Below are positions 336 to 50,621 of a DNA stretch of 64,000 bases, one piece after another (positions within the stretch are counted from its first letter, which is position 1; each line of letters opens with the position of its first letter). The notes beneath the pieces were generated by a model that saw only the letters and a list, made by a program, of their open reading frames with translations, did no database searches and was not told where the DNA came from. The DNA is taken from the IMG/VR virus record IMGVR_UViG_3300045971_000344, positions 124,001 through 188,000 of that record; one strand, written 5' to 3'. A program made the position numbers and the translations under genes.

Positions 336-338
336 AGA

Positions 339-1265
339 CTAATCCTTTAGCGACTCATATTTTTCTTTTAGAAATTCTAACACTGTAGAAGCGTCTCGTA
401 ACTTATGTCGGCGCATATTAGCGATAAAGTCATCCACAATCATTTTTTCTGCCTTAGACCCAGAACGAGAATTGTGTATATTGTTCTCTATAGAGATTTG
501 AATATCTCTTCTATCAGATCCGTAGTATAATCTTGACCTCAAATCATCTGCGTCTTCTGAAAGAACATCTCCACAGTTTTTCTTAAAAAGCTCATTTATT
601 AGGTCCACGTATCCTCTAGATGAAGTAAATCCTTTTGTTGCCTTGTTTTTGTTCTGCACCATATAAGCGTTGTAATCCTTATAGAAATAAATAGGGATAC
701 CATAGGCGGTTCCATATTCACCTATCTTTCTATACATCTTAGCAAAGTCATAATACTTATCGAATTCTTTGCTTGTCAATTCTCTCTTTTTGTCAATACT
801 TATAACTGCGTACTCACAAAGGTTTATGTGGACCTCAGTTATATACTTATTTAGGGGCTTTATAGTTGGTTCTGTAGAGTAAATGCGATCCTCATTCTCT
901 TGATACCTAAGTGGTGCCTCATCATCTGAAGATCCATTTCGGAATTCTCTACCCCAGTAATCTACGGATTCACCTGAGTATTTCTCTGCGAGCTTATGTC
1001 CGTTAATTACCAAGCAACAAGCCCAATCCGGACTTGCCTGTCGTGCGTATCCTCCAAACTTAACCCTAGACATAGACAAAAAGTAAGGTTTAAACTTCTT
1101 GGACTTATTTGTTCTATCTGAAGATGTACCTAGGTTATTGGTCAAGTGTATGTTATTGTCTTCCATTATATTTACAAGTTTATCCACAGTAGTATTATGG
1201 TACACGATAGGAGATATACCTGCCAGTTCTGTATTAGTGTTAACATGTACTTTATTTATCTTCAT
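339..1265 (-). CDS. Putative ADP-ribosyltransferase-fold protein with N-terminal leader
   Basis: VYHNT...NIMEDNNIHL, YFLSMSR and ENEDRI follow the H...S...ExE order of ART active-site strands. Leader is MKINKVHVNTNTELA. Confidence 0.5.
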   Translation of the reverse strand: MKINKVHVNTNTELAGISPIVYHNTTVDKLVNIMEDNNIHLTNNLGTSSDRTNKSKKFKPYFLSMSRVKFGGYARQASPDWACCLVINGHKLAEKYSGESVDYWGREFRNGSSDDEAPLRYQENEDRIYSTEPTIKPLNKYITEVHINLCEYAVISIDKKRELTSKEFDKYYDFAKMYRKIGEYGTAYGIPIYFYKDYNAYMVQNKNKATKGFTSSRGYVDLINELFKKNCGDVLSEDADDLRSRLYYGSDRRDIQISIENNIHNSRSGSKAEKMIVDDFIANMRRHKLRDASTVLEFLKEKYESLKD

Positions 1266-1531
1266 AAGTTATCCCTAAATTCCCTATCATTTTTGACCCA
1301 CCTGTCTACTTCCTCTTTAGTTACATCTGCAGGTTTGTGTTTACTACATCTAAAACAGAGTAGTTTCTTCCCTGCCTTTGCTTCAGCTTTTTTAACTTCC
1401 TCGTAGTGGTAACACTCTAAAACAACTATATAGAGCGTACCTTTTGGTACTAATTTACTTACTACGTGTATTATTTTTCTTTTTGGAGTGACTGTAGGTT
1501 TCTCATCTACAGCGATAACTGTCTTTCTCAT
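1262..1531 (-). CDS. Small leader-family protein, possible Zn ribbon
   Basis: Likely start MRKTVIA at 1531 after AAGGTGA. Contains LECYH...CFRC. Confidence 0.6.
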   Translation of the reverse strand: MRKTVIAVDEKPTVTPKRKIIHVVSKLVPKGTLYIVVLECYHYEEVKKAEAKAGKKLLCFRCSKHKPADVTKEEVDRWVKNDREFRDNL

Positions 1532-1532
1532 C

Positions 1533-1637
1533 TTAATCACCTTTATTTTTGTATCGGTCCAAACCCCAAGCTATAACTGCACAAATTGCTAGGGCTACAA
1601 GGACCACCCCTATCATTCCATTTTCTGAGAGTGTCAT
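1533..1637 (-). CDS. 34-aa single-pass membrane peptide (not in ORF track)
   Basis: MTLSENGMIGVVLVALAICAVIAWGLDRYKNKGD, preceded by strong SD AGGGAG; fills the gap exactly. Confidence 0.65.
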   Translation of the reverse strand: MTLSENGMIGVVLVALAICAVIAWGLDRYKNKGD

Positions 1638-1666
1638 AGTTGTTCTCCCTTATATAAATTATTGGC

Positions 1667-2161
1667 TTAGTCTAGATGTAATGGAGAGATGTCCTTTGCA
1701 TTTTTAAGGTCCTCTTCAGTAAGGTGCTTACGTTTTAGTCCGATTAAGAACTTGCCTAAACTTTGTTTAACCGGAGGAAGTATACCCACTATTTGGTCAG
1801 GGCTAACAGTACCTTCTTTCATGAGCCATCGACCTAAGCCGTTAGAAGACTCATGGTGTTTGTCTTGAACGTACTGACTTTTATCGTCTTTGAACTTAAT
1901 TATGGACAATACTGTATAGTCCTTTTCTTGATTTATGGCCCAACACGCCTTCATTACCCACGCTACCGCGTCTACCAAGTCTTCAAAGGCATAGACATAC
2001 CCCTTTTTACTCAAACGCCCACCAAATTGATTCTTTGTAAAACCCAGGCTACTCTTATTAGGTATTAATCCTGTTTTAAGTATCTTCTTAGCGTTCTTCG
2101 TATCCGTTACATGGTACAATACGCTGTCTTCTGATGATATTGTTATACGTTTGATCTTCAT
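1667..2161 (-). CDS. ADP-ribosyltransferase-fold protein (Tpt1/KptA- or DarT-like N-terminal motif)
   Basis: LYHVT...AKKILKTGLIP followed by GYVYAF. SD AGGAGGAG. Leader MKIKRITISS. Confidence 0.6.
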   Translation of the reverse strand: MKIKRITISSEDSVLYHVTDTKNAKKILKTGLIPNKSSLGFTKNQFGGRLSKKGYVYAFEDLVDAVAWVMKACWAINQEKDYTVLSIIKFKDDKSQYVQDKHHESSNGLGRWLMKEGTVSPDQIVGILPPVKQSLGKFLIGLKRKHLTEEDLKNAKDISPLHLD

Positions 2162-2205
2162 GAGTTACTCTCCTCCTACTATTTTCTAAAAGTACAAGAT
2201 AATCT

Positions 2206-2841
2206 TTATACAAGCTTTTTGAAATACTGCGCTACAATAGACGCACCAACTCTTGACTTTGTATAAGTATCACTAAGTATTTTCATAAAAATAACCTCGT
2301 CTGGAGAGATCCCTTTCATGCTCTCGCCCCTTTTCTTTCTTCTTTGTTCCTCTATAACCCAAGCCTCTGGGTACTTTTTAGCCGTAAACTTTTCGGCCCT
2401 TATATGTACAGTCTCGTATTTACTTTTTTCGTCCCATCGTGCGGCTGACCCATGAACTATGAACTCTGCTAGAGAAGCAAAGTGTTCATTCGGGTCTTTT
2501 AGGTGCTCTTGTTTGCAAAGATCTAGAAATAGCTTCTTGTCACTTTCACTTACTTTAGTCTTGCCCTTACGATGCCATAAGTGGTGTGCAAGTTCATGTG
2601 TTAATACTTGAACCATTCGTGTACTGTTCTTTACATCAGCCCCTATACATATTGTGTCTTTAGGTTTAAGCCAGTACTCGGATCCCTGTATATTGGAGCA
2701 ACAAATTGAAATAGGTTCAACTATGTTGACCTTTAAGCCTAACTTTGGTTCCAACTTGTTTAAGGCTCTTATTTTAGTTTCTGTTGGACTATAGTAACCA
2801 TCTCTTCTAAATAGACTTTGTATAAAGTTTACCTTGCTCAT
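2206..2841 (-). CDS. Zincin-like metallopeptidase (HExxH)
   Basis: VLTHELAHH with downstream PNEHFA glutamate. Confidence 0.65.
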   Translation of the reverse strand: MSKVNFIQSLFRRDGYYSPTETKIRALNKLEPKLGLKVNIVEPISICCSNIQGSEYWLKPKDTICIGADVKNSTRMVQVLTHELAHHLWHRKGKTKVSESDKKLFLDLCKQEHLKDPNEHFASLAEFIVHGSAARWDEKSKYETVHIRAEKFTAKKYPEAWVIEEQRRKKRGESMKGISPDEVIFMKILSDTYTKSRVGASIVAQYFKKLV

Positions 2842-2856
2842 TATTTACTCCAATAC

Positions 2857-4089
2857 TCATCCGTTATTATTATTCTTAAAAATATTTACAATCTTGTCGC
2901 TTAAGGGTATCTTCTTAGATGAAAGCATATTAAATATACTTGTATCGCCCCAAGTTGCAATAGCTTCAAGCATTTTTTCAGTCAGGTCAACTTTTTTCTG
3001 AAGTAAGAATCTTACAGAATCGTTAATATCCCCGATTATGCAGTTGATAATAACATCTTCTTCTGGAACAATTCCGTTATCTAAAAACGTCCACAAAATA
3101 TCAGGCTTGTACTTACTAGCTTCTAAGCGTAATGCGTGGCAAACAGGGATGTTATTCCTTATCAAGATCGCGATTGAACCTGGATCATTTTTTATGGCCG
3201 CGGCCTTTACTGCCTCACTAGGGATAATTCCTCTTTTAATAATATATTCTATGTCCCAACCCTTTTTCTTAACCTCAGCAAGTTGGACGCTCTCACTTGG
3301 GTTAGAGTGTACTTTTAGTAAACTCGAAGGGCCTGTGTAGTCCTTATTTAAGCACTCTCCTATTACAGTAAATGCCTGTCGCGTCAAAAATACCGCCTGA
3401 AGTGGCTCCGCGTTATGAATAATTCCTCTCTTAGATTTATCTGCAAACCCAGAGTATCCACACTGTCGCAATAGCCAATTCCACTTAGTAGCTTTGGAAA
3501 GAGCGTTTCCATTAGTTAAATCCGAAGCTAGCATCCTACTAAGGTTCCAAAAGATTGATGAAGGATTTTGCTCATGTGCAGAGCTTCTAGCACCTTTCAA
3601 CTTTTCAGCATACGCTTCCTCAAGTAGATTATAAGCATTATCCTTTACTTCTTTTTTAGTTTTACCTGTATAATCTATCTCATGCTCCATTTGTTTCCAA
3701 CACTCATCCATAAAAATCTTTTTTAACTTCTTAAAGTCCTTATCAAACTTATTGGATCCATACTCGGTATATAGATCATTAACAAATGATTGCTTGTCTT
3801 TTACTCTAACTACCCAAATATGTGGCTGAGTAGCAGCAAAAGGTAAACGGGTTAACGTCTTATGTATATCTATTCCATACTCTTCCCAACAGGCCTGAAG
3901 AGGGTAAGTATAAATTCCTACCGGAGTATTATATATCGACTTTGGGTTAATACCAAGCTTGTCAATTGCAGTAAAGCTAATATAAACATCTGGATCGTCT
4001 TTCCACTTAGACAAATATTCATAGGCACTAATCTTTTTGTTTACTTTAAGATTTACGCGTGCCGAGATCTCTACATTAGTTATTTTCAT
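2857..4089 (-). CDS. Paralog family A member (divergent ART-like core) with C-terminal helical repeats
   Basis: VYISFT..DKLGINPKSIYNTPVGIYTYPL...CGYSGFADK...IH.AEPLQAVFLT is shared with 4929..5978 and 10905..12038. C-terminal PSExVxxA repeats. Confidence 0.6.
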   Translation of the reverse strand: MKITNVEISARVNLKVNKKISAYEYLSKWKDDPDVYISFTAIDKLGINPKSIYNTPVGIYTYPLQACWEEYGIDIHKTLTRLPFAATQPHIWVVRVKDKQSFVNDLYTEYGSNKFDKDFKKLKKIFMDECWKQMEHEIDYTGKTKKEVKDNAYNLLEEAYAEKLKGARSSAHEQNPSSIFWNLSRMLASDLTNGNALSKATKWNWLLRQCGYSGFADKSKRGIIHNAEPLQAVFLTRQAFTVIGECLNKDYTGPSSLLKVHSNPSESVQLAEVKKKGWDIEYIIKRGIIPSEAVKAAAIKNDPGSIAILIRNNIPVCHALRLEASKYKPDILWTFLDNGIVPEEDVIINCIIGDINDSVRFLLQKKVDLTEKMLEAIATWGDTSIFNMLSSKKIPLSDKIVNIFKNNNNG

Positions 4090-4092
4090 AGC

Positions 4093-4932
4093 CTACGTTC
4101 TCCAATAAGTTACTTTCAATCTTTTAGCATTTTTTGCCCACCAGTTATGTGCAAGAACGTTTACCGTAGGTATCCAATATTTTTTATAATATTTTGGAGC
4201 CAGTACTTTTAGATTTTCAAGTTTATGAATTTCGTTCCAAATATAGGTCTCTATTTCATCAGTACCACTACCCATTAAGGCGTTTACTCCGGATAAGTTT
4301 TCTCCATAAGCTTTAAGATTCTCTGGACTAGTCGAGAATACCCAAGATATACTTTGTGGAGAACATACTATATTTAAAGGAAACTGATGTAAATAAATCA
4401 TATCCTTTCCGTGCAGGTAACTAAAGCTACAAGGGTCATAGCCCTTTTTTATCTTATTTGGATGATTATGTAAAGTAGCTAATCTAGTAGAGCCATATTT
4501 TTCTATGGTCTTAGCGGAAGCTGGGTCTAGACTTACGGATTTATTAGTCCCACTTGTTGCGTATGCTATAATCTTCCCTGTTTCTAAATCAAAAAAGTAG
4601 ACATGCTCTCTGGATTTATTTCGGATTTCTTCTACCTTAGCTAACACTGACGCTAGTAACTTTGGACTTAATTTCGCAGGGGTTGTCTTTATAGGTTTTG
4701 GAAGACCTTCTTCTATAGCTTTTGGCATTGTAGCATCTAACAATTTAACCGGCTTAGCATAGACCTCTTCAATTACGGTTTCAAAGACTCCATTAAAGGG
4801 TCCATTATTAGCTTTTAGCCACCTTTTAAGTTCAGCAGTAGCTTTTGCTTTATTTAAGCCCTGTTTTTTCCATTCAATTAATAATGGACGAATATCGGCT
4901 TTTGTTACTCTAGCTAATACTATCTTTCTCAT
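4093..4932 (-). CDS. JAB/MPN-like metalloprotease-domain protein with leader
   Basis: REHVYFFD...TLHNHP...SFSYLHGKD fits E...HxH(P)...S..D. True start is MRKIVLAR at 4932, overlapping the upstream stop (ATGA). Confidence 0.55.
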   Translation of the reverse strand: MRKIVLARVTKADIRPLLIEWKKQGLNKAKATAELKRWLKANNGPFNGVFETVIEEVYAKPVKLLDATMPKAIEEGLPKPIKTTPAKLSPKLLASVLAKVEEIRNKSREHVYFFDLETGKIIAYATSGTNKSVSLDPASAKTIEKYGSTRLATLHNHPNKIKKGYDPCSFSYLHGKDMIYLHQFPLNIVCSPQSISWVFSTSPENLKAYGENLSGVNALMGSGTDEIETYIWNEIHKLENLKVLAPKYYKKYWIPTVNVLAHNWWAKNAKRLKVTYWRT

Positions 4933-5978
4933 AACGTGCCCTTTTCTTTTAGGTCTACCAAGATTTCTTTCCAAAGACTTCCTGTTAATCCTTTAGACAC
5001 TAGCTTTTTAGACAGTATACTCAATTGTGAAACAGTTAATTGAGATAAAAATTTCTGTTTATTACCCACGAATTTTATACCAAAAGGCTGAGCCGAGGTT
5101 ACACCTAAAATATAGTGTAAAAGCATTTTTAGTGATCTACCTTTTTCGTACCCATCAAGATCAAGACACTCGTCTTCAGTCTTAAGGAGTTCTATTAGGT
5201 CGACTGGTGATTTAACTAGCTTTGGTGGGTCTTGGTGATTCGCTACATTTTTTATTTTAGTAATAACTGTAAAAGCCTTGGCTGTTAGGAATATTGCCTG
5301 AATAGGTTCACCTTCATGAATAAACGCTTTTCCACTTTTATCTGCGAAGCCATCGTACCCACAAAATCTCAATAAAGTATTCCATTTTGTTATTTTCTTT
5401 ATACCGCTGTCTTCACCGGTTAAAGCTTCGGCTAGGCTCTCAACAAAACTCCAAAAAGCAAACGCAATGGATTTATACTCTTTACTATAACGCTCGATTA
5501 AGTAATCATAATCTTCGTCTACGCTATCAAAAACCTTCTTTTCGTTCTTAATAGCTCTTAAGCAACTCAGTTTCTTTTCTTTACCATTCTCCTTTAATTC
5601 AAGGTAAAAAGATTTGAGCTTTTGAGCATCGGCTTTGAAGTTGTCTAATTTATAACTGGTCTTCATATCGTGAATAAAATTAGCACCAGGCCTTACTTTT
5701 ATTACCCAGATGTACGGACGGTCACCAGCATACGGAATTGCGCTTATGGTCCACGATTCTAATTCATTGTCTTGAAAGATTTGTTTTAAAGGATAAGCGT
5801 AGATACCTAGTGGGGTCTCATAGTCTGCCCGTGGATTAATCCCAATTTTATCTTCATAAGTAAAGCTAATATAGACATTTGGATCATTTTTATACTTCTT
5901 AAGTTCTTCATAAGGGTTTACCTTAGGATTGAGCTTTGGATTAGACCTAGAAGAAACTTCTACCCAGTGTATTCGCAT
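4929..5978 (-). CDS. Paralog family A member (divergent ART-like core)
   Basis: VYISFT, GINP, GIYAYPL, CGYDGFADK and EPIQAIFLT motifs. Leader MRIHWVEVSS. Confidence 0.6.
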   Translation of the reverse strand: MRIHWVEVSSRSNPKLNPKVNPYEELKKYKNDPNVYISFTYEDKIGINPRADYETPLGIYAYPLKQIFQDNELESWTISAIPYAGDRPYIWVIKVRPGANFIHDMKTSYKLDNFKADAQKLKSFYLELKENGKEKKLSCLRAIKNEKKVFDSVDEDYDYLIERYSKEYKSIAFAFWSFVESLAEALTGEDSGIKKITKWNTLLRFCGYDGFADKSGKAFIHEGEPIQAIFLTAKAFTVITKIKNVANHQDPPKLVKSPVDLIELLKTEDECLDLDGYEKGRSLKMLLHYILGVTSAQPFGIKFVGNKQKFLSQLTVSQLSILSKKLVSKGLTGSLWKEILVDLKEKGTL

Positions 5979-5986
5979 ATACTCTC

Positions 5987-6793
5987 CTACTTAGTATATT
6001 TTAACAAATGAGTTAACGCTTTATTTGGATCTTTAAAAACCTTCCCATCTTCTGAAATAGAGTAATCAACTATGTTTTTAGGTGTAACAACCTGTGGCTT
6101 ATTTTTAATAAGTATTTCGTGTTCATTACCCCAGCGCATCCCGTTAGCCATAAAGCTATCAAAGTCCTTCTCGTCTAAGTAATGCCTAAACAGGTCTTCA
6201 ATGTTTAAAAGAACATCAGGACCTTTAAGTTTCTCTTTAAGTATTATCGCAGATTCATTACGGTTCCTAGGTTGCCACCCAGCAAACTTTCTTGCTATAT
6301 ACTGTTCAGGACTCCAACTAGCCAGTTTACAATCTCTAAGAGAAAGAGATCCTTTTTCTAATAAAGATTTAAGAACTTCGTCTTTTAAAACTATACCTCT
6401 ATAACAGGTTTTAGGCGGAGCAGATCTAAAGATAGCTGGAGGGTTTATATTCATAATAAGGTCCACTAACTCTGGGTTATCATTTTTACCAAAGTCAGAC
6501 CATAGAATTGCCGCGTGTAAACATTTAACCTCTTCTTTAGTTGGGTCTGGTAGGACCAAAAATCGCCAAAACTGAGCATCAGCACAATAATCGGCCAACT
6601 TTTGGACTTCTTTGTCTGTCTTTACTTTTTGCTTTGATGAAGACAGTCCTAGTCTGTGCCAAGTTCCTGCCTTTGGTCCACGTACATAAAATCCGGTATC
6701 TCCGTAGCCACACGCTGAAAAGAAAAAATTTATTTTAGTCGTGTCTACTGCTTGAGATTTCTTTTTGACCGCGGCAATAACAATCTTTCTCAT
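5987..6793 (-). CDS. R-S-E clade ADP-ribosyltransferase (VIP2/Alt/Mod-like motif order)
   Basis: CYRG...ASWS...IARKFA...NEHEILI. Leader MRKIVIAA. Confidence 0.7.
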   Translation of the reverse strand: MRKIVIAAVKKKSQAVDTTKINFFFSACGYGDTGFYVRGPKAGTWHRLGLSSSKQKVKTDKEVQKLADYCADAQFWRFLVLPDPTKEEVKCLHAAILWSDFGKNDNPELVDLIMNINPPAIFRSAPPKTCYRGIVLKDEVLKSLLEKGSLSLRDCKLASWSPEQYIARKFAGWQPRNRNESAIILKEKLKGPDVLLNIEDLFRHYLDEKDFDSFMANGMRWGNEHEILIKNKPQVVTPKNIVDYSISEDGKVFKDPNKALTHLLKYTK

Positions 6794-6799
6794 AGCTTA

Positions 6800-7462
6800 C
6801 TACTCCACATGAGGTAGATACCGCAACTGCTGGTAACGACCTTTATTTTGTTTTATGAAATTCTCTGCCTTGACCTTACTAATATTGCGCTTAGTAGTAT
6901 ACCAATCTCCACAGTCATAATACTGGACGTCAAAAGTAGATACTACCTTTATGTAAAACATAGCGCTATAGGACCTATGTGTCCGCCCGTCTTTTGTCTT
7001 CCACGTCCAGATTGGATAGGACCCATCATAAAATCCATCATGTCCTAAGAAAACAACCTTCTCATATTTTCGGTAATCAATACTCGACCTAACATAGACC
7101 TTATCCATTCTAGTTAGGTCCTTAGGATTTGTAGCAATATATTCCTTAGTAGGCTTATAAATCAAATTATGGTCAAACTCTATAAACTTTACATTAGGCT
7201 CATCATAGTAAAAATCTTCAGCATCGGTTCCTTCAAGATCTGTTGTTACTGCCTCGCCTTCACACGGACCAACGCCTACTCCTGTCTGTCCATCGCATTT
7301 TACTATATAGAAATTCAGGTCCTCAAGAGATTCTGCAAAGGTATACTCCGCCTTAAGTAATTTCTTTCTCAGGTCTTCTACGATATGCTTATCTACATCT
7401 TGATACCGTACGTGCTTACATACGATCTTTGACTTAGCTTTAGCTATAATGATCTTTCTCAT
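6800..7462 (-). CDS. Hypothetical leader-family protein
   Basis: 220-aa ORF starting MRKIIIAK; no domain recognised. Confidence 0.6.
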   Translation of the reverse strand: MRKIIIAKAKSKIVCKHVRYQDVDKHIVEDLRKKLLKAEYTFAESLEDLNFYIVKCDGQTGVGVGPCEGEAVTTDLEGTDAEDFYYDEPNVKFIEFDHNLIYKPTKEYIATNPKDLTRMDKVYVRSSIDYRKYEKVVFLGHDGFYDGSYPIWTWKTKDGRTHRSYSAMFYIKVVSTFDVQYYDCGDWYTTKRNISKVKAENFIKQNKGRYQQLRYLPHVE

Positions 7463-8055
7463 ATAATAACCCCTATAGCTTGCTTATACCAGTTTTTAAA
7501 TGTAGTATTCTCTAACAGGTCCAAACAACCCAGTGTAAGTAACTGTGGATAAAATTCATGCTTATGAGTTAGTGCATAATGCTCCTCAGAGGACATCTTT
7601 CCTAGTATAGGCGTAAACCACTGCTTAATTTGATAATGGCTAAGTTGTAAAAAATAATTATTAGAGTAAAAACACTTAAGCCATTCTTCATTCTGAGCGA
7701 GCGGTGAGTCTAACAAAGAATGTAGAAGCTTGTACTCTTTTGAGATCTCATTATCTATGTGGTCATTAAATTTACTATGCAAGAACTCATGCACTATAAC
7801 TAATGCAGGTGTCCAAGGTTTATCCTCAAAAACTTCTATGTTTATAATAATTTGACTTCCTGTCCACTCTCCTTGTGAAGCTCCTAGGTCTTTATACTTT
7901 TTTAGGCAAAAGTTCTTTGAAGAAATTATGTTCTTTATTACGGCCGAAAGTTTCGGATCTTTAATCAGGCCAGGTATTTTAGTAAAAGTTTCTTGTGCTA
8001 AATTAAGGTATTTTTCTCTAATTGCTTCAGGTAAATACCCTACTTTTATCTTCAT
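7459..8055 (-). CDS. Zincin-like metallopeptidase (HExxH)
   Basis: VIVHEFLH plus downstream HEFY; ATGA overlaps on both sides. Confidence 0.6.
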   Translation of the reverse strand: MKIKVGYLPEAIREKYLNLAQETFTKIPGLIKDPKLSAVIKNIISSKNFCLKKYKDLGASQGEWTGSQIIINIEVFEDKPWTPALVIVHEFLHSKFNDHIDNEISKEYKLLHSLLDSPLAQNEEWLKCFYSNNYFLQLSHYQIKQWFTPILGKMSSEEHYALTHKHEFYPQLLTLGCLDLLENTTFKNWYKQAIGVII

Positions 8056-10298
8056 AAGCCAAGTTCCTTTACATACTTAGAGAGGTCTTGCTTTGCCTTG
8101 AATTTAGTTCTTTCCTCTACGGCTGGTCCGTGTGATCCATTAATTCTCTCAACTAAATAAGCATGATGTAGTACGTATTGAATATTTGGATTAGTCAATC
8201 CAATTTCTTGTGTCTGAAATTGCTTAGTAAATGTCCAAGAGCAATCTTCATCTGTATCAGTTTCCCCAGATACCTTAGATAGTGCCTTTCCACTTATAAG
8301 AATATCACCATGAAAAATTATGCCAATATCAGCTTTACGTCCAAAAGATTCTCCTACGTACTGCAAACTCTTATCTATATTAGGAGCTATATAAAGAACA
8401 TCTCCCATAGAGCGACCTGTCTTTTTTGTGCCTCGAAGTTTGAATCCTGACAATAATATAGCCCCTGCGGCTGATACTGCGGTCCCATGAAAACCGTCTT
8501 TAATGACTTTAACTTCAGGGTTTTTTAAGTTATTTCGTAAATAGTTTTCTATTTTTTCAGATCGCTTTATTGTCCATAGTTTCTTTACCTTAAAAGATAC
8601 CCCATGAACGTTCGCCATGAAGGCTTCTAACTTCTGTTCCACTTCATGCGTGTCCTCAACAGCTTGTTCTACCTTTACTTGTTCTTCTCTCTTTATAGTA
8701 AAATACTTTTCAAAGATCTCATCTTCGTTACGCTTTCTGACATTCCACTTCTTAACAATACTTAAAGAGATCCTAGGAATCTCTTCATCAGGTAATGCCA
8801 TTTTAAGATGCTTTTCTTTTACTTCCCCAAAGGGAGAATCATAGGTTAATCTAAATTTTGTTGCCAGTAACGCAGACAATACCGTCTGTTTTACAATCAA
8901 AGAATCCTTTAGGCCACTAAAAGTATATTTAAATAAGTCGTCTATATCTAAGGTCTTAAGGAGCTTTATAACAAGAACATCGTCTAGTCGGACAAATTGG
9001 TCTTCGGTTAGGACTAATTTCTTTAAGTACGCTTGTAGTGATGACCCTGACATACTTGTTATAGCCGTAACTGGGTCGGACTGTTCAACAACCTCCGAAC
9101 TATCTTTATCTATTGCCTTATAGATACTTTTTATTCTAGTTATATCTGTAGTTGATAAATAAGGTATCATCCAAGACTTGGGAGAAAATAGCTTGAAATC
9201 AATTTGCTTTTTATACTGTAGCGCGCGCTCTATGGCTTGTTCAAAAGGATTTGACTTTATTCCATAACTTTTTGCATAGTCATCCGCATTTATTCTAAGG
9301 CTAGGTATTTTCTTAATTGACCTAGCGGAGGTTACAAACCAAGACATAGTCTTATCAAACATAAGGGCGCAGAATATCGCAAGGTCTTTATCTCCGCCCA
9401 CATCTGAAGAAAACTCTGAAAAATGTAAGATAGGGTACAAATAAAATTCGGCCTTTAGCGTGCTATCTAAATTGCTTTTTATCCTTTCATCATAAACTCT
9501 ACTTTGACCATATTTTTTCTTACTCTCGTTAAGCCTATTCTCATAATCCTTGGTTTCTAAAAAAGCCTTTCTTTTATCTAGTAAATATTTGTTCATAAAT
9601 TTTATTATTACATCTTTTACTAAAGTCTTATCTAATTTGTTTGCCTTAAGAGCGACCAAGTCTAAGTCTTTTAGACCCATTGTCTTGGACGAACCTACAT
9701 TTAACTTTACTCCCCTGACTTCTATGTCTTCTTTACTGTCCACATGAAATTTTCTAAAAATAGGAACAACAACCTTTGTCTTTAACTTAGCCTTTGGACC
9801 AAGCATTAAGTATGCAGTAACATCGTGCTTAACATCTTCGGGGGCTTTCAAGAAGGCTTTTGTAAGCTCAGGGAAAAACTTAATAAGGTATTCTGAAATG
9901 CTATAGATACAAAAAATTAAGAAATTAGTGTTCTCATTTATAACCTTAGGATTTACACCCAGGTCTTTTAGACTTTGCTTTACAAGCACGTGGTTATCTT
10001 TAAACGTGTTCTCTATTAAAGAAACTCCGTCACCCTTCTTAAAACTCTTTTTACCTATGATAGAAAGTAATCGCGACCCTGCAAACTTGGTTTCATTCTT
10101 TCGAACCATGGGATGCCCGTTTAGAATAGGCACAAATTTCTTTCCGTCAAGATCAATATATAAGCTCTTTAGATAGCTATGAACCAAAACAACAGGAATA
10201 GAGTGTCCAATCAATCTTTCATTTTTCCAATACTCAATACCTTTTATTTGGTCAAATTGATTGATCTTAGCAGCCAGTGTGTATTTTCTATTAAGCAT
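8052..10298 (-). CDS. Large protein with C-terminal PARP-like (H-Y-E) catalytic domain
   Basis: GFHGT...AILLSGFKL...GRSMGDVLYIAPNIDKSLQY...QEIGL resembles the PARP signature HG[ST]..I...G....G.M.G.G.Y.A....KS..Y...E. Confidence 0.7.
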   Translation of the reverse strand: MLNRKYTLAAKINQFDQIKGIEYWKNERLIGHSIPVVLVHSYLKSLYIDLDGKKFVPILNGHPMVRKNETKFAGSRLLSIIGKKSFKKGDGVSLIENTFKDNHVLVKQSLKDLGVNPKVINENTNFLIFCIYSISEYLIKFFPELTKAFLKAPEDVKHDVTAYLMLGPKAKLKTKVVVPIFRKFHVDSKEDIEVRGVKLNVGSSKTMGLKDLDLVALKANKLDKTLVKDVIIKFMNKYLLDKRKAFLETKDYENRLNESKKKYGQSRVYDERIKSNLDSTLKAEFYLYPILHFSEFSSDVGGDKDLAIFCALMFDKTMSWFVTSARSIKKIPSLRINADDYAKSYGIKSNPFEQAIERALQYKKQIDFKLFSPKSWMIPYLSTTDITRIKSIYKAIDKDSSEVVEQSDPVTAITSMSGSSLQAYLKKLVLTEDQFVRLDDVLVIKLLKTLDIDDLFKYTFSGLKDSLIVKQTVLSALLATKFRLTYDSPFGEVKEKHLKMALPDEEIPRISLSIVKKWNVRKRNEDEIFEKYFTIKREEQVKVEQAVEDTHEVEQKLEAFMANVHGVSFKVKKLWTIKRSEKIENYLRNNLKNPEVKVIKDGFHGTAVSAAGAILLSGFKLRGTKKTGRSMGDVLYIAPNIDKSLQYVGESFGRKADIGIIFHGDILISGKALSKVSGETDTDEDCSWTFTKQFQTQEIGLTNPNIQYVLHHAYLVERINGSHGPAVEERTKFKAKQDLSKYVKELGL

Positions 10299-10316
10299 AA
10301 ACCTTACTCCTTAACA

Positions 10317-10888
10317 CTATCTAAGTTCTTTTTTAGGATCCAATTTGTCTACAGCTATAACCTTTAGTATTTTTGGATCATAGACAATGCAGTGCATATC
10401 TCCCGAATAATCTTCAATAACTAAGGAATCATATCCTAAAGATAAAATAAGCTTTAACCATTCTTTTGCTTCAGTGTTCTTAAATAGATTTTCCCAGACG
10501 TAGCTAAATGCCCAAGCAAGTTCACCCGACCCCATAAGATTTTCTGTGTAAGAAACTCTGGTATGATTAATCGACTTTAGCCTACGGTCTAAATTTGGAA
10601 CTGCATCTAGTAGGAGATCTACAACTTTTTTGGAAACATCTCCAGAGATTTGTTTCTTAGAAGAAATCTTAACAGAGATAACTATCCCCACCTTATTGGA
10701 ATAGTGATTAACCGCATAGGACTTTGCACCATCTAAAGCATCAGTAAAATAAAGTCCAGGTCCATGTTCCATCCAATTTTTTCATCTAGAGAGTAACTAA
10801 TATCAAATTTATCTGAGGTAGTCATTCTACCCTGATACCATATTTTTGTTGCGGAGCTACTAATACTCGAAAGTACAACCTTTCTCAT
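10317..10888 (-). pseudogene. ART-like gene (polyvalent-protein type) split by a 1-nt frameshift in an A6 run
   Basis: ATG at 10888 after SD GAGG gives MRKVVLSS...IWYQGR...KFDISYSLDEK. One extra A at 10777-10782 joins it to NWMEHGPGLYFT...AKSYA...LGYDSLVI...IVYDP (track ORF 10317..10772). Confidence 0.7.
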
Positions 10889-10904
10889 ACTAACCTCGTC
10901 TAAT

Positions 10905-12038
10905 TTAATTGTATGCGCTTTTGCCTGTCTTTGCCCAACAAGCTAGTATAGCCCTATCCATTCGTTTCCACCATTGTCTATCTTTTAGATCTGATCCCGC
11001 GGATACTTGTTTTTGGGCACAGTGAGTGATAAGCATCTGTAAACAATTTTTATTAGCCGATTTCCAGAGCTCTGGAGGAGTATTCTTTACTACAAGACCA
11101 GGTATCTTACTAATAGGTATAGATTGATTCTCAGCCGAGACCAACCACTGCAACAGAGCTTTATCATACTCATATTCTTCGTTATCATAACGCTGGTCAA
11201 CTGTTCCAAGAGCTCTAACAAAGTCAATCATATCCGAGATAGGTAAACGCTTATCAGTATTTTTATACGTCTTATTATAGCATTCACCTATTACGGTGAA
11301 CGCATCTTTTGTTAAGAATACAGCCTGTATAGGTTCAGATGGATGGATTATACCCTTTCCTGTCTTATCTGCAAAACCCGTATAGCCACATTTACGGAGC
11401 AACCAGTTCCATTTAACCGCGCCATTCGTATGTATGCTCTCATCAAATAGTGTAAGCTCCCCCGCTAACAGTCTACTAAGATTCCAAAAACTACTACATG
11501 GATTTTTAATCCTAGCGGTAGTAATTGCCTCAAAAAATAGATATTTCCATTTTGCATTAACATTTTTAGTAAAGATAGTTTTCCAATCACGTATGGCTTT
11601 AGGTGAAGCGCCCCTAAATTTTTCAAGTTGTTTTGCTTTTTCTTTTACCCAATGACCCATGTATATTTGTTCAAGTATTACGGCATCCTTATCAAACTTA
11701 TCTGAACCATAGTCGGTGTGCATGTCTTCAATGAAGGTCTTACCGGTCTTTGCACGGACAACCCAGATATGAGGTGCGTTACCCGCAAAGGGTATTCCTT
11801 CTAAACTTTGATCTCGTCCTATGTTATATTCAAACCAAGCAGTTTTTAACGGATAAGTATAGATACCGATAGGGGTATTGTATTTTGATTGAGGATTTAT
11901 TCCTACTTTATCAATGTGGGTAAAACTAATATAGACATCCGGGTCATCTTTCCACTTCTTAAGGTAGTCATAAGCACTAACCTTTGGATTTAGCTTAGAG
12001 TTTGACCGCGTAGCCAAGACCACTTCTTTAACTTTCAT
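10905..12038 (-). CDS. Paralog family A member (divergent ART-like core)
   Basis: Same motifs as 2857..4089. Leader MKVKEVVLAT. Confidence 0.6.
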   Translation of the reverse strand: MKVKEVVLATRSNSKLNPKVSAYDYLKKWKDDPDVYISFTHIDKVGINPQSKYNTPIGIYTYPLKTAWFEYNIGRDQSLEGIPFAGNAPHIWVVRAKTGKTFIEDMHTDYGSDKFDKDAVILEQIYMGHWVKEKAKQLEKFRGASPKAIRDWKTIFTKNVNAKWKYLFFEAITTARIKNPCSSFWNLSRLLAGELTLFDESIHTNGAVKWNWLLRKCGYTGFADKTGKGIIHPSEPIQAVFLTKDAFTVIGECYNKTYKNTDKRLPISDMIDFVRALGTVDQRYDNEEYEYDKALLQWLVSAENQSIPISKIPGLVVKNTPPELWKSANKNCLQMLITHCAQKQVSAGSDLKDRQWWKRMDRAILACWAKTGKSAYN

Positions 12039-12040
12039 TT

Positions 12041-12466
12041 TTACTCTCCAAAAGTCTCTGCCCAGTCACCTTCAATATCAGAATCGTAGTAATCTATATC
12101 TGAAATATCAAATTTTGATAACCAAGCGTTACTTCGTAAGTATTCTGCTACCTTTGGGTTGTGATGCCATTTCCCTCTTTTAGTAACATCCGTTACAGAC
12201 AATACTAGTTCTCTGCTACCTGCAAAGTAAAGAACTAATCCTACTGCATCTTTTAACTTAAAATGTTCCCAGACGCGATAATGAAGAAGAGACTCAGGGA
12301 AAACATAGACTGTATTTTTGTCTACGACCATTGCTCTACAAACCCTAGATCTATCACAACATTCTTTAACCTCTTTTTTATCTGGGTTTACAAAAACGTC
12401 TTTATAGTCATTGCTAAATCTAGTAGACACTTGGTCAACGAACTTTGCCAGTACGACCTTTCTCAT
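12041..12466 (-). CDS. Hypothetical leader-family protein
   Basis: Starts MRKVVLAK; SD GAGG. Confidence 0.65.
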   Translation of the reverse strand: MRKVVLAKFVDQVSTRFSNDYKDVFVNPDKKEVKECCDRSRVCRAMVVDKNTVYVFPESLLHYRVWEHFKLKDAVGLVLYFAGSRELVLSVTDVTKRGKWHHNPKVAEYLRSNAWLSKFDISDIDYYDSDIEGDWAETFGE

Positions 12467-12475
12467 AAATAACCT

Positions 12476-12541
12476 CTAGCTTTTTGGCTTCTTAGGCTGC
12501 TTTGGTTTCTTTACTTCTTTACGAATATCTTTATTTCCCAT
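12476..12541 (-). CDS. 21-aa highly basic peptide (not in ORF track)
   Basis: MGNKDIRKEVKKPKQPKKPKS; SD AAGAGG upstream; fills the intergenic gap. Confidence 0.5.
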   Translation of the reverse strand: MGNKDIRKEVKKPKQPKKPKS

Positions 12542-12564
12542 GATGGTTTCCTCTTTTATTTATA

Positions 12565-12849
12565 TTAGGTTTGACTAAACCAGTCTTTAGTTATAAAAAG
12601 ATTTATCCTGCTCCTCATTCCTTTTTCAATATCTTTTTTATAGTTCTCATAAACCTCAGGATATTTTTCTTCGTAGCCACTTTGAGCATACATCTTTTCT
12701 ATTTCATTTGGATTCTTTATTGCTTTTGCTTTAAATAAATCAGTTATCTTAACATGGCGCCCTTGAGTTAGGGCCAAATATTTAGCACCTAAATCTACTT
12801 GGCTAGAAGTCAATCCAGATTTATCTTTTGCTATAACGACTTTTCTCAT
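12565..12849 (-). CDS. Hypothetical leader-family protein
   Basis: True start MRKVVIAK at 12849, ATGA overlap with the upstream stop. Confidence 0.6.
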   Translation of the reverse strand: MRKVVIAKDKSGLTSSQVDLGAKYLALTQGRHVKITDLFKAKAIKNPNEIEKMYAQSGYEEKYPEVYENYKKDIEKGMRSRINLFITKDWFSQT

Positions 12850-13217
12850 TTCCAAGCCTCTCTTGTATCAGGGTCACGGTTATTAAAGTTCTGACTGTTT
12901 ATATCAAACCACTCATCTTTAGTGATCTTATACCGTTCATGTATCTTTAGGTTTATAATCAGGTACCACCCGTATTCGTACGCCAATTTTTCCCTAGCGT
13001 TTCGACTCAAACTAGTGTTTTGTTTGTGCTCACAATAGGACATCCAATGTCCGAGCTCATGGGAAAGAATAATCATTTTCTTTCGCGTTGTCTGAACACT
13101 GTCTAAATAAATAGTCTTTGACTGATAATCACAGCGGCCTAGAACAGATAGCGGCTTTTGCTCTATTTGTATTCCGAGGCCGTGTGCTATATGGATTAAT
13201 TCCTCTAGTCCATTCAT
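12846..13217 (-). CDS. ImmA/IrrE-like HExxH metallopeptidase
   Basis: LGIQIE...GRC...IYLD...ILSHELGHW...REKLAYEYG. Likely start MNGLEE after AAAGGA. Confidence 0.7.
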   Translation of the reverse strand: MNGLEELIHIAHGLGIQIEQKPLSVLGRCDYQSKTIYLDSVQTTRKKMIILSHELGHWMSYCEHKQNTSLSRNAREKLAYEYGWYLIINLKIHERYKITKDEWFDINSQNFNNRDPDTREAWK

Positions 13218-13231
13218 GGTAAATCCTTTGG

Positions 13232-14236
13232 TCAACAATTAAGTTCAGCTTCTTTAAAGACCTTTTCAAGTTTGTTCGCAAAGTCAACATACTTCTTTCT
13301 ATACACTTTAGCACTAGGATTGGCCTTAGTGGTCTTAACGTCCTTTACATCTGGTGCTATTGCTTTCTGTAACTTGGTTATAAACGCCAAAGCTAAGTCA
13401 TAAAATTCTTTATACTCAGCATTACTCAGCTCTTTTTCTATTTTTGATCTTTGGGCATCAATTTTCTTTTGTGCTTTCTTAACAAATACATAGTAATAGT
13501 CGCGTATAAATTCCCCGTTATCAGCCGTTTCTTCTTCACCTAGATAGTTACGCTCGTCTATCTCAAATTTCAGATCATACTTATGGAGCGCGCAAACCAT
13601 ATCCTTTAGGTTATACCGTGCTACCTTTTGTATCTGTTCTTCAGATAGGGGCTCATCATGAGTATTCGCAGTAATAACGTCTGTCTTTTTACTAAAAGCT
13701 CCATCATTACCTGTAGCGGACTTTATTTGTTTTGGATCAAAGACATGAAAATTCAAGGCGTTCATATCAAATTTATTTTGGGTTATTATACCATCAAAAC
13801 CCAATGCCTTTAGTTCTTTATGGAAGGGCTCAATATAACCCCAATGCCCTTCTCTAATTCCGCTTAAAGTGTCTTCGTTATTGAACTTACCTAGTTTGGA
13901 CGATAATTTTTGGACGTGCTTTTCGATTCTAAAATCAAAAGGTTTTTGTATACTTAGATAGACTGGCAGTACGCTCCCGTTTGCCCGGTCAGCAAAGCCA
14001 TTGGCTAAGGAAGGCGTAGATGTAAAGGAAAACAATCCTCGGTTACGCGTGTCCCTAAACGTTCCGAAGTCCGCGGCTGTACCATGATACATAACAAGCG
14101 GGGACCCATGTTTGTCAACTGCTTTGGAGCGACCAAACCAAATCCAGAAGTTATCCACGCCTTTAGGGTCAGCGTTAATAGCGTTACCTTTGGAATTCAT
14201 GTTCGTCTTAAAACTCGCGATAACTACATGTCTCAT
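13232..14236 (-). CDS. ADP-ribosyltransferase-like protein of the polyvalent-protein type plus helical C-terminal domain
   Basis: FWIWFGRSKAVD..G.PLVMYHGT..F..F...LFSFTS...A..FA...PVYLSIQKPFD...GFDGII...VFDPKQIKSATGNDGAFS. Leader MRHVVIAS. Confidence 0.75.
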   Translation of the reverse strand: MRHVVIASFKTNMNSKGNAINADPKGVDNFWIWFGRSKAVDKHGSPLVMYHGTAADFGTFRDTRNRGLFSFTSTPSLANGFADRANGSVLPVYLSIQKPFDFRIEKHVQKLSSKLGKFNNEDTLSGIREGHWGYIEPFHKELKALGFDGIITQNKFDMNALNFHVFDPKQIKSATGNDGAFSKKTDVITANTHDEPLSEEQIQKVARYNLKDMVCALHKYDLKFEIDERNYLGEEETADNGEFIRDYYYVFVKKAQKKIDAQRSKIEKELSNAEYKEFYDLALAFITKLQKAIAPDVKDVKTTKANPSAKVYRKKYVDFANKLEKVFKEAELNC

Positions 14237-16656
14237 AGTAATCCCTTAGATTTAAGGAGCGCCAGTACCTCATTTGGACCAATGACTTTTACGCCCAATG
14301 ACTGAGCCTTTACCATTTTAGATGAGCCACTTCCAGGGTCTTTTGCTACCAAATAGGTCAGACCTGCCTTTACTGCTGACCAGACTTGACCACCGTTTGC
14401 CTCAATGACTGCCTCTGCATCATGCTGGCGAACACCCGTCCAGACAAAAGACACTCCGTCTAACTTAGAGCTCTTTCGTTCTTTCTTTTGGACGGCTTTT
14501 ATGTGGACCCTTCCGGCGTTGCGCTTCAAGAAGGCTTTGAAGGGCTTTATACCTTGTGCAAACTGTTTACCTGTATCAAGAGAGAACCCAGAGATCTGAG
14601 AAATTTGTTGCGCGACCTCACCTACAGTGAAACCCGCCCAATCAAACATTTCTTCTCCACGTACTTCATAAATCTTTCTCAAGCGGGTACCCGCAATTAT
14701 CTCTCCAAAGAAAGGCGTGGCTGAAGCCAGCGTAGGTAACTCAATACCATTCAAGGCCGTTATTATTCCGTTATAAATTTTCTCTGCATTACGCTTCTGG
14801 ATTCCATCAATAGACATCAACTCTGGAATTGAGGTATTAATCAGCTTATCAATAGTGTCAATACCTGCATGATAGAATCGCTCAATTAAGCCCCTACCTA
14901 AGTAATCTACCCCAATTTTAGAAAAGAAGCTTGCCATTTGCTTGATCTTTACGGTTTCGTCTTCACTTGCATTGACCAATACCAAATCAACTTCGGTTTC
15001 ATTCCATGCGTATTCTCCAAATACTTTCTTATCAGGCATCTGGGCCTTATTGGCCTTCACTAAGGTCTTCAAGATGTGAGGAATTACATCACCGCTCCTT
15101 GTAAGTAAAACTTTCGCGCCTGGTCCAAGCTTGTTGTCGTAAACAAATGCCGCGTTAAAGGCAGTGGCGAACGTTACGGTTACACCACTTAACTTTACTG
15201 GACTGATCTTTATTCGAGGTTTTAACTTACCATGCTTAGATACTGCCCAGACAACCTCTTGGACATGTGCTTCAACAGCTTCGGTTTCACCGGTCTTAAA
15301 GGCCTTGGCGTAATCGGGTTTAATCGTATTACTAGCGTTACCCATTGCAACTCTGATCTTACAGCTATTTGCTTCGATTACCGCTCCATCTAGTTCAAAA
15401 CCCCCAACCTTCTTTCTTTCGTTTATATAAGAAGTAAGATGATCTTCATTCACCTCAGTGGATTTTAAAACAGAATAGTGAACAACGTGGAGTCCACTTT
15501 CTTTTATAAGTTCAAGTTGCTCTTTCTTATCCAAACGGTCCTCATGACTCATTATGGAATAGGCTATTACATTTATCTTACTCAAGACCTTTACGTTGGG
15601 CTCATTACGGTTTATCATTCCCGCCAAAAGGTTTCTACCGTTTGCGTATTCTTTATCCCCGTAGGCCTTAACGGACTCAAAGTCAGCCTGGGACAGAATT
15701 CCTTCGGCCCTAAAGGTATATTCACCCTTGAACTTCGCACCTATCTTCTTTGGAACTGTAGGAACGTTCTTTATGTGTCTCGTAACGTCTTGACCAATTG
15801 ATCCGTCACCCCTTGTGGTCGCCCTAACAAAGGTCCCGTCTACATACTTAAGGGACAGGCTTAATCCATCTAATTTATCGGACAGTACGTAGAACTTATC
15901 TTTTGTTTCCTTAACAAACTTTGCGGTTGCTACTCCATCGGGCTTTATCTTATTTAACGACCCCATGTCATAATCTAGCTGTACTTTTGACCTTATGTTT
16001 TTTGCAACGGGCGCACCAACCGCGTCAAGAATTGCCGCTCGTTTAGAGTCCAGGGTCTTCAAAAATTCTACAAGGTCATCATATTGGTTATCTGTTATCT
16101 CACTTTCTTTAGAACCAGTATGGTACGCATCTTTAGATGCAAGAGCTAACCCGAATAACCAGGCTACTATATCTTCTTTACCCGCGGTAGCATAGTGTGC
16201 AAAGTCATGGATAAGTTTAGGTGTAGTTAGAACCAGTGCATTTGGTTGCGCCTTTACATCTGCGGACTGGAGTCTAGGTAAATTCCAAAGGAGTGTTCTA
16301 ACCTCAGACATATTTAGAGATTTAGCTGTAAATGTTCTAAAATTTTGAGGGTGTAAATTAGCTGACTTCATTGTACGTTTATCAATGTCGCGCTTAACCA
16401 AAAGCTTTTCAAAGTCAACAGGCGCCAAATATATAGCATACTCGTCTTGAATCCAATATGCGATGATCTGAGGATTCAGGCTAAGAACTACCAGGTAAAA
16501 CTTTTTGACCTTGCCATTAGTCGTAACTACTCCTCGAAGCCTACTTCCTATTTTAAGTTCAAAGCCTGCTACCCTGATATAGTCTTTTTGGTGTTCCTTC
16601 CAGTATTTATCAGCATTTAGGAACAAATCTTTTTTATAATGCTTAAGTAACTGCAT
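14233..16656 (-). CDS. ligA: NAD+-dependent DNA ligase with N-terminal extension and C-terminal BRCT
   Basis: Domain Ia YH...ITDNQYD, MGSLNK, adenylation motif SDKLDGLS, TRGDG..GQDVT, LDGAVI, AFK, OB fold RSGDVIPHI, HhH repeats, BRCT (FVWTG...GG...YLVA...SSKMVKA..LGVKVI). Confidence 0.95.
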   Translation of the reverse strand: MQLLKHYKKDLFLNADKYWKEHQKDYIRVAGFELKIGSRLRGVVTTNGKVKKFYLVVLSLNPQIIAYWIQDEYAIYLAPVDFEKLLVKRDIDKRTMKSANLHPQNFRTFTAKSLNMSEVRTLLWNLPRLQSADVKAQPNALVLTTPKLIHDFAHYATAGKEDIVAWLFGLALASKDAYHTGSKESEITDNQYDDLVEFLKTLDSKRAAILDAVGAPVAKNIRSKVQLDYDMGSLNKIKPDGVATAKFVKETKDKFYVLSDKLDGLSLSLKYVDGTFVRATTRGDGSIGQDVTRHIKNVPTVPKKIGAKFKGEYTFRAEGILSQADFESVKAYGDKEYANGRNLLAGMINRNEPNVKVLSKINVIAYSIMSHEDRLDKKEQLELIKESGLHVVHYSVLKSTEVNEDHLTSYINERKKVGGFELDGAVIEANSCKIRVAMGNASNTIKPDYAKAFKTGETEAVEAHVQEVVWAVSKHGKLKPRIKISPVKLSGVTVTFATAFNAAFVYDNKLGPGAKVLLTRSGDVIPHILKTLVKANKAQMPDKKVFGEYAWNETEVDLVLVNASEDETVKIKQMASFFSKIGVDYLGRGLIERFYHAGIDTIDKLINTSIPELMSIDGIQKRNAEKIYNGIITALNGIELPTLASATPFFGEIIAGTRLRKIYEVRGEEMFDWAGFTVGEVAQQISQISGFSLDTGKQFAQGIKPFKAFLKRNAGRVHIKAVQKKERKSSKLDGVSFVWTGVRQHDAEAVIEANGGQVWSAVKAGLTYLVAKDPGSGSSKMVKAQSLGVKVIGPNEVLALLKSKGLL

Positions 16657-16676
16657 AAGTTGGGTCTCCGTTCTAG

Positions 16677-17342: not shown

Positions 17343-17343
17343 A

Positions 17344-48063: not shown

Positions 48064-48067
48064 GATC

Positions 48068-50569: not shown

Positions 50570-50621
50570 AGGAGTTTCTCCTTAATGTGTTGTGTATCAT
50601 ATATAAATTATGATTATTAAT

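Follow-up and report, generated by a model that had tools for sequence, protein, structure and literature searches.

A divergent phage protein family with a predicted ADP-ribosyltransferase fold and variable C-terminal tails, represented by three paralogs in one virus genome

In this study, we analyzed a stretch of 64,000 nucleotides (in the following the window), which comprises bases 124,001-188,000 of the IMG/VR record IMGVR_UViG_3300045971_000344, a virus genome of 294,944 bp judged complete. The window carries three genes whose products, here designated P0001, P0002 and P0003 (Table 1), have an N-terminal core of ~255 aa in common; the helical middle varies among them, and their C-termini are unrelated. 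On balance, we favour the reading that these genes are old paralogs of a divergent family of host-targeting effectors with the fold of ADP-ribosyltransferases (ARTs), in which the C-terminal tails would choose the targets. The evidence comes from the relationship of the three proteins, the size of the family, the predicted structure and residue conservation of the core, and the diversity of the tails.

A preliminary description of this DNA had reported three dispersed paralogs with common motifs, a differing central helical insert and swapped C-termini, one of them made of helical repeats, and these claims could be reproduced. The three intervals correspond to exactly three complete open reading frames (ORFs) on the minus strand, and the motifs YISFT-x3-K.GINP-x3-Y.TP.GIY.YPL, P.IWV, FW, KWN.LLR.CGY.GFADK and IH..EP.QA.FLT..AFTVI are found in all three proteins. 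Pairwise BLASTP gave 38-45% identity over 288-321 aa with E values of 1e-56 to 1e-90, and the resemblance is therefore not due to chance; the alignment of the three covers about the first 255 residues with 36-45% identity to the first sequence. The least conserved region, around aa 120-175, was modelled as two long helices (112-141 and 146-173). These first two helices of the helical sub-domain of P0003 represent the variable insert of the family, and because they vary, the length of the core ranges from 221 to 397 aa among family members. No similarity was detectable among the C-termini of the three paralogs. BLASTP against the window genes revealed no further protein similar to them, and the three are also the only copies in the whole genome. 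The longest exact DNA word common to any two of the genes has only 16 nt, and the duplications are therefore old; P0002 forms a long branch in the core tree. Positions 2800-8700 of the window are present without any difference in a single 115,914-bp contig of two pond-metagenome runs; these runs are possibly the source data. In the greedy non-overlapping set of window ORFs, all are on the minus strand except two short ones of 52 and 60 aa, and the standard genetic code suffices for the window.

No model of Pfam, PHROGs, NCBIfam or PADLOC matched the core of the three proteins. By a word-based search at least 230 relatives were found, which are unnamed or 'hypothetical protein' except for two with automatic source labels. 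From 119 cores with about 40% identity an alignment and profile (A2) was built. Pfam at E<=10 gave scattered chance matches only with the 119 cores, and PDB sequences gave no match to the profile better than E 0.27. Run against 1.84 billion metagenomic cluster representatives (50% identity), the profile returned 3,329 proteins at E<=1e-3, 1,217 of them at E<=1e-30. In IMG/VR, 218 stretches matched, and many of these are located on contigs of 100-560 kb. When 185,579 species genomes were scanned with a single peptide pattern, only two contigs of metagenome-assembled genomes matched. In INPHARED (50,697 GenBank phage records), tblastn with P0003, P0059 and P0024 together with a regional megablast found nothing except one marginal match, a divergent hypothetical protein of 265 aa from Alishewanella phage vB_AspM_Slicko01 (WGH49616.1; L010:5788-6585). 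It scores 44.8 bits with the family profile and, by reading of its sequence, keeps a Y-A-S-F-S strand 1 and G-Y-S-G-I-G-D, while E-P-x-Q is apparently lost. With 3,329 clusters and a near absence from GenBank phages and metagenome-assembled genomes, the family is therefore large, unnamed and essentially one of uncultivated phages.

For the core of P0003 (aa 1-265), the AlphaFold2 (AF2) model computed on A2 reached a pLDDT of 93.2 and a pTM of 0.88. It contains six strands of at least three residues (35-40, 59-63, 90-96, 221-224, 238-241 and 247-254), a short strand of two residues (102-103) and the helical insert, which follows the N-terminal strands (to aa 104) and precedes strand 221-224. 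Foldseek against BFVD listed unnamed viral proteins at the top (E 1.6e-8 to 1.8e-7), followed by entries named 'PolyVal ADP-ribosyltransferase' and 'ART-PolyVal-like' and by large polyvalent proteins (E 7e-4 to 1e-2, probability 0.95-1.0). Clusters of shape neighbours in the ESM Atlas carry PF18760 ART-PolyVal, PF26151 AcrIF11_ADP_ribosyl, PF13151 DUF3990, PF23847 and DUF7211, and others are fused to NADAR or LPD23. By language-model features, 'RES domain' (0.93) and ART-PolyVal (0.92) clusters were nearest. The best solved match is the ejection protein gp27 of cyanophage A4 (PDB 9K3A chain B, residues 1419-1610), and the named structural neighbours altogether are ART-PolyVal domains, AcrIF11, RES/MbcT toxins and PARP1. 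Matches to the ART superfamily, obtained from BFVD, the ESM Atlas and the PDB with two aligners, cover model residues ~33-260, and small stand-alone ARTs reached TM-scores of 0.54-0.65 by target. The predicted structure appears to have the split beta-sheet of ARTs, with two halves of three strands each and helices at their sides. Since several libraries and methods agree, and not one score, we regard an ART fold of the core as very probable from the models. A core unrelated to ARTs, named in the preliminary description as the outcome that would speak against it, was thus not obtained, the neighbours of the predicted fold being polyvalent-type ARTs and AcrIF11.

Residue conservation provides a second line of evidence. 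Among the 119 cores, K44, G46, P56, W210, D224, E235, Q238 and F241 are invariant, R11, Y60, Y62 and H232 occur in 116 or more, and N48 is invariant or nearly so among the polar residues. R11, found in 118 of 119, lies in the N-terminal arm and was not modelled within a strand. ART clades are set by residues in strands 1, 2 and 5, which are H-H-h, H-Y-[EDQ] or R-S-E (PMC7955679); ART-PolyVal carries H, Y and D in this order (PMC5512222). In the family, strand 1 reads V-Y-I-S38-F-T40, with Ser at position 38 in 109 cores, Thr in 9 and His in 1. The first His is thus absent, as claimed in the preliminary description, Ser replaces the His of the H-Y-D active site of ART-PolyVal, and as judged from the alignment the family lacks what each canonical ART clade has in strand 1, a His or an Arg. 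The aromatic residues of strand 2 are present in G58-I-Y60-T-Y62-P (Y60 in 117/119, Y62 in 116/119); PARPs have a Y-F-A motif in this strand (PMC7955679). D224 ends strand 221-224, and E235 and Q238 are located at or just before strand 238-241. End-anchored counting in the structural alignments, which assumes zero net indels and is not a residue-level alignment, places PARP1 E988 near residue 238 and AcrIF11 D115 near residue 236 (numbering from established knowledge and bioRxiv 10.1101/2024.08.26.609590). By this count, the catalytic position would fall at the E235-P-x-Q238 edge and not at the GY.GFAD motif. By hhalign, the G-[FY]-D-G of ART-PolyVal is weakly paired with G-Y-x-G-F of the family, with its Asp falling on residue 220, which is not conserved (S56/T23/D10) and lies four residues before the invariant D224. 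The parallel to polyvalent-type ARTs that had been drawn in the preliminary description therefore stands for the neighbours of the predicted fold, but equivalence motif by motif is uncertain and no hidden Markov model (HMM) matches. The degree of conservation of polar residues suggests an enzyme rather than a scaffold.

In contrast to the core, the tails are highly diverse. In 201 of 204 members, the core is located at the N-terminus; 96 of the 119 aligned members have a tail of at least 50 aa, and these tails fall into 52 BLAST clusters, while 23 members consist of the core only. In the core tree, close relatives bear different tails, with tail labels changing 24 times compared to a minimum of 11. 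The tail type of P0001 was found on four separate core clades, the tail of P0003 is common to its nearest orthologues only (cluster T2 of P0003 with P0004, P0005, P0008 and P0010), and that of P0002 is a singleton cluster with no Pfam match. The tail of P0001 was modelled by AF2 as 5.5 helix-hairpin repeats of ~26 residues each (pLDDT 79), with a self-similarity z of ~2.9, in agreement with the helical repeats described for it. On its own it had no relative in the big word search and no match in Pfam, including PF13475 DUF4116 and PF02985 HEAT, and Foldseek of its model against the PDB gave generic designed PPR/armadillo solenoids only (E>=0.05). It aligns with three tails built of ~25-aa repeats of the type 'NP[ST]ExVQxxAVKxxPxxIxxI', one of which, in P0093, matches DUF4116 with 28.5 bits, above the cut-off, as well as HEAT. 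P0219 carries an ankyrin tail (E 2.5e-39).

Also, the genes can be arranged in arrays. At least two family copies are present in 17 of 77 IMG/VR loci. The largest array, L030:8567-19403 (IMGVR_UViG_3300045988_167296), comprises nine consecutive full cores within 11 kb with identities of 25-46%; divergent tails of 164-237 aa are attached to seven of them, and two are tailless. L069 has four tandem copies with cores 60-64% and tails 21-31% identical, and L006 has four copies plus an ART-PolyVal gene. Together with the 52 clusters among 96 tails and the different tails on closely related cores, these conserved-core arrays agree with the earlier proposal of a diversified family with exchangeable tails. 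Two cores each occur in four giant proteins (P0166, P0179, P0180 and P0217). P0217, with 2,058 aa, combines two cores with PBECR5, SLT (lytic transglycosylase) and NUDIX domains, which is a polyvalent-protein architecture (cf. PMC5512222); the three window proteins, consisting of core and tail only, are not giant multidomain polypeptides of this kind. In a groundwater phage contig (L009:8991-14346), two genes of the family are arranged alternately with three tail-tube (Phage_TTP_2) paralogs near baseplate and sheath genes, an arrangement that may hint at an association with the virion or tail.

Within the window, transcription on the minus strand passes a long module of myovirus tail genes, which extends from 63.4 kb to ~22 kb and comprises the sheath, the hub and wedge of the baseplate, and several fibre genes. 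This is followed by an NAD+-dependent ligase gene and then by a 12-kb block with six ART-fold genes, namely the three paralogs and genes for an ART-PolyVal protein, an ART-PolyVal-like protein and a PARP-domain protein (Table 1). In a scan of the whole genome, the Pfam-detectable ARTs were all located inside this 12-kb block of 295 kb, and no Macro domain was found. The order from the ligase to the P0003 orthologue is kept in the related phages L004 and L005, and 7 of 77 other phage loci have an ART-PolyVal gene at a distance of no more than 10 kb, which is directly adjacent in three of them.

Table 1. Positions of the three paralogs, their parts and the neighbouring ART and ligase genes in the window
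Feature	Position	Strand	Characteristics
Paralog 1, P0001	2857..4089	minus	Complete ORF, 410 aa
P0001 predicted ART-fold core	aa 1-255 = nt 3325-4089	minus	Profile A2 317.6 bits over aa 3-254
P0001 predicted C-terminal alpha-solenoid tail	aa 256-410 = nt 2860-3324	minus	AF2 model
Paralog 2, P0002	4929..5978	minus	Complete ORF, 349 aa; most divergent of the three
P0002 core	aa 1-254 = nt 5217-5978	minus	Followed by an orphan tail of 95 aa
PARP-type catalytic domain (aa 548-654) in a 748-aa protein	8052..10298	minus	PF00644 E 5.2e-9, 36.3 bits, above cut-off
Small ART-PolyVal-like protein, 151 aa	10317..10772	minus	PF18760 E 1.4e-3, below Pfam cut-off; own ART-PolyVal profile 24.4 bits; phrog_25279 E 2.5e-10
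Paralog 3, P0003	10905..12038	minus	Complete ORF, 377 aa
P0003 core	aa 1-265 = nt 11244-12038	minus	Tail = aa 266-377
P0003 predicted helical sub-domain	aa 106-216 = 11391..11723	minus	Inserted in ART core; AF2 secondary structure
Canonical ART-PolyVal protein, 334 aa	13232..14236	minus	PF18760 E 1.9e-25, 90.7 bits
NAD+-dependent DNA ligase	14233..16656	minus	PF01653, PF03120, BRCT; phrog_3869 E 2.8e-132; upstream edge of ART cluster

The small ART-PolyVal-like protein of the window and a similar one at L006:18205-18753 match only positions ~50-157 of the ART-PolyVal profile, corresponding to its C-terminal two thirds, and the part holding the Y-H-G-T strand is therefore absent from them. They may represent a further divergent or truncated ART subfamily travelling with the family. 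Just downstream of paralog 1, the gene at 2206-2841 weakly matches the Peptidase_M78/IrrE N-terminal domain (E 4e-3) and PADLOC RmrA models (E 1e-4), both below any cut-off. A toxin-antitoxin-like pairing was considered and rejected, because the immediate upstream neighbours of the three paralogs show no relationship to one another and other phages have no conserved partner gene. A scan of positions 1-17,500 for promoters and terminators gave no more than shuffled expectation and was uninformative.

Taking these data together, we propose that the N-terminal core (~230-260 aa) would be a split-sheet ART fold, nearest to ART-PolyVal and AcrIF11, into which a helical sub-domain of variable length is inserted. 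NAD+ would be bound in the cleft by Y36-I-S38-F-T40, the K44/N48 loop, G58-I-Y60-T-Y62, D224, H232 and E235-P-x-Q238, ADP-ribose would be transferred to a host macromolecule, and the repeat-type tails, perhaps also the helical insert, would pick the target. For AcrIF11, the helical region is the most variable one and was proposed to serve target recognition (bioRxiv 10.1101/2024.08.26.609590). Each paralog might in this way disable or redirect a different host factor, probably a target of defence or takeover. Delivery from the virion appears possible, because the genes are positioned after the baseplate and fibre genes as for T4 Alt, because the core matches the A4 ejection protein, and because of the fusions in polyvalent proteins; among the modifying domains of polyvalent proteins that are injected, ARTs are the most common ones (PMC5512222). 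A bolder version of this proposal, for which we see a rather low probability, would make the family the phage counterpart of polymorphic toxins. It would combine an ART-fold warhead, in which a constellation of Ser, Lys, Asp, His, Glu and Gln replaces His/Glu and perhaps carries out an undescribed chemistry (with a new acceptor, or with something else than NAD+ as donor), with rapidly exchanged repeat modules for aiming. Delivery from the virion, either solo or as part of polyvalent or ejection proteins, would be directed against many different host defence proteins, and the arrays of up to nine copies would record an arms race.

Among known systems, ART-PolyVal (PF18760; Tox-ART-HYD2 clade) comes closest: It originates from phages, is the structural neighbour with a name that is nearest, has a helical region interrupting the sheet, and occurs solo or in one or several copies within giant multidomain proteins, as the family does in P0166, P0179, P0180 and P0217. 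Furthermore, ART-PolyVal genes adjoin family members here and in other phages. Unlike ART-PolyVal with its H-Y-D residues, the window family has a much larger helical insert (~110 aa), an N-terminal arm (R11, N17), a K44-G-I-N-P loop, Ser38, Tyr60/62 and the invariant D224, E235 and Q238, shows no HMM match, and usually consists of an N-terminal core followed by a variable tail. AcrIF11 (PDB 6KYF; PF26151), whose target is known to be Cas8f N250, differs from the family by keeping the His, by lacking a C-terminal tail and by not being known in arrays, and it has no sequence match. T4 Alt, ModA and ModB (R-S-E) are similar in that several paralogous ARTs, with different targets in T4, are present in one myovirus. 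The T4 ART genes show an association with those for the baseplate and with late genes, and Alt is a packaged protein that is injected (PMC5512222); likewise, the window paralogs follow a module of tail, baseplate and fibre genes on the same strand. The T4 enzymes nevertheless belong to a different ART clade, with neither a sequence match nor a top structural match to the family. The RES toxins (MbcT, NatT, Xre-RES) are NAD+ degraders without targeting tails, and the family has neither a RES Pfam match nor an Xre neighbour. Because there is no HMM match and neither the H-Y-D nor the R-S-E residues are found, the family is, by these defining features of its sequences, not a member of PF18760, PF26151 or RES.

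In A4 gp27, unlike in the family, the matching region is one domain of a protein of >1,700 aa, with a sequence identity of 10-12%. The protein forms the outer layer of the pre-ejectosome, and the paper describing it assigns it no ART or enzymatic role (PMC12002296). The related giant protein Pf-WMP3_26 also matches, and these cyanopodophage ejection proteins may carry an ART-fold domain that has gone unrecognised.

Several observations weigh against a family of ART-fold effectors. The 119 cores gave no match with the ART-superfamily Pfam models, including PF18760, at E<=10, and hhalign against a profile of 29 ART-PolyVal sequences reached a probability of 5-16% only. With the family profile used whole, in halves or with the insert removed, merely the short GYxGF...PxQ segment was aligned (P 0.002-0.008); sequence homology to ART-PolyVal is therefore not established, and the link, as drawn from the models, is structural only. 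Ser38 stands in place of the canonical strand-1 His or Arg, and the position of the canonical catalytic Glu may be a Gln in the family. A common pocket formed by the invariant residues is so far a presumption. In addition, A4 gp27, the best match among solved structures, has a structural role in ejection, and no activity as an enzyme has been described for it (PMC12002296), and the runs holding the stretch from 2800 to 8700 are two pond-metagenome DNA runs, with no RNA run among them.

The same observations bear on other explanations. An enzyme with an ART fold could act on nucleic acid or on a small molecule, similar to the ADP-ribosylation of DNA by DarT, the RNA 2'-phosphate chemistry of Tpt1/KptA or the modification of RNA by CmdT, with the tails docking it on a complex or in the virion. 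The non-canonical site, with Ser for His and E-P-x-Q, leaves the chemistry open, one neighbour cluster in the ESM Atlas is fused to NADAR, which has been tied to the processing of ADP-ribose derivatives (PMC9503650), the genes adjoin an NAD+ ligase here and in L004 and L005, and the giant fusion joins the core to the RNase-type PBECR5 and to NUDIX. We nevertheless consider this unlikely, as the named folds nearest to the core (ART-PolyVal, AcrIF11, PARP) belong mainly to enzymes that modify proteins (PMC5512222) and ankyrin, HEAT and solenoid tails are typical protein-binding modules. It is likewise improbable that the proteins are RES/MbcT-like NADases or phosphorylases degrading NAD+ without ADP-ribose transfer to a target, since hypervariable repeat tails and arrays of up to nine copies would be odd for one small-molecule substrate. 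Such an enzyme would be in line with the RES/MbcT toxins among the structural neighbours. It is opposed by the missing Pfam RES match and by the absence of an Xre-type antitoxin, the flanking genes being mutually unrelated with only a weak Peptidase_M78 Pfam match, and draining NAD+ would be of little use to a lytic phage with an NAD+-dependent ligase.

The match to A4 gp27 could also mean that the core is a catalytically dead ART-fold scaffold, with a binding or structural role in the virion or in the apparatus for ejection. The eight invariant and >25 near-invariant positions among the 119 members, with polar residues (K, D, E, Q, H, R, N, S, T) at many of these sites, look like an active site and make this quite unlikely. 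Moreover, a domain of an injected protein can be enzymatic, since T4 Alt and ART-PolyVal are packaged enzymes (PMC5512222). Finally, given the missing profile matches, the likeness to ARTs might be an artefact of structure prediction or reflect a common alpha/beta arrangement with an unrelated function. This we regard as highly improbable, because searches of BFVD, of ESM Atlas shapes and of the PDB with two aligners as well as sequence-feature embeddings converge on ARTs, small stand-alone ARTs give the TM-scores mentioned above, and the association with recognisable ARTs in the genomes does not depend on the model.

If the prediction of a divergent ART family is true, more than 3,000 clusters of phage 'hypothetical proteins' would gain a fold and a testable activity, and a large divergent branch of ARTs with Ser for the strand-1 His and an invariant D...H..E-P-x-Q signature would be added. 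It would also provide a natural library in which one catalytic core is combined with dozens of repeat-protein tails for studying the target choice of phage ARTs, which the authors of the AcrIF11 study call an open question (bioRxiv 10.1101/2024.08.26.609590). Jumbo myoviruses with many fast-evolving ARTs have already been described (PMC9503650); the theme is therefore known, and the family and its active-site variant are not. Further ARTs of jumbo phages alone would be no surprise, and what deserves notice is the size of the unannotated family, the non-canonical catalytic signature and the arrays of one core with many tails.

Further paralogs were observed in the tail module of the window. The genes at 35053-39117 and 39152-43372 encode adjacent giant paralogs of 1,354 and 1,406 aa, which are 36% identical over ~1,280 aa. 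Their C-terminal parts are of the tail-fibre type, and that of the former also matches the N-terminal part of the latter. Three consecutive genes at 46786-52487 (425, 833 and 621 aa) match a tail-sheath PHROG and each other, in addition to the canonical sheath gene at 61466-63358. The fibre-like paralogs at 22005-23909 and 24317-26806 share 37% identity over a length of 356 aa; a gp53-like C-terminus is found in one of them and a glycine-rich domain in the other, and their neighbours carry CBM_5_12 and chitobiase-type domains.

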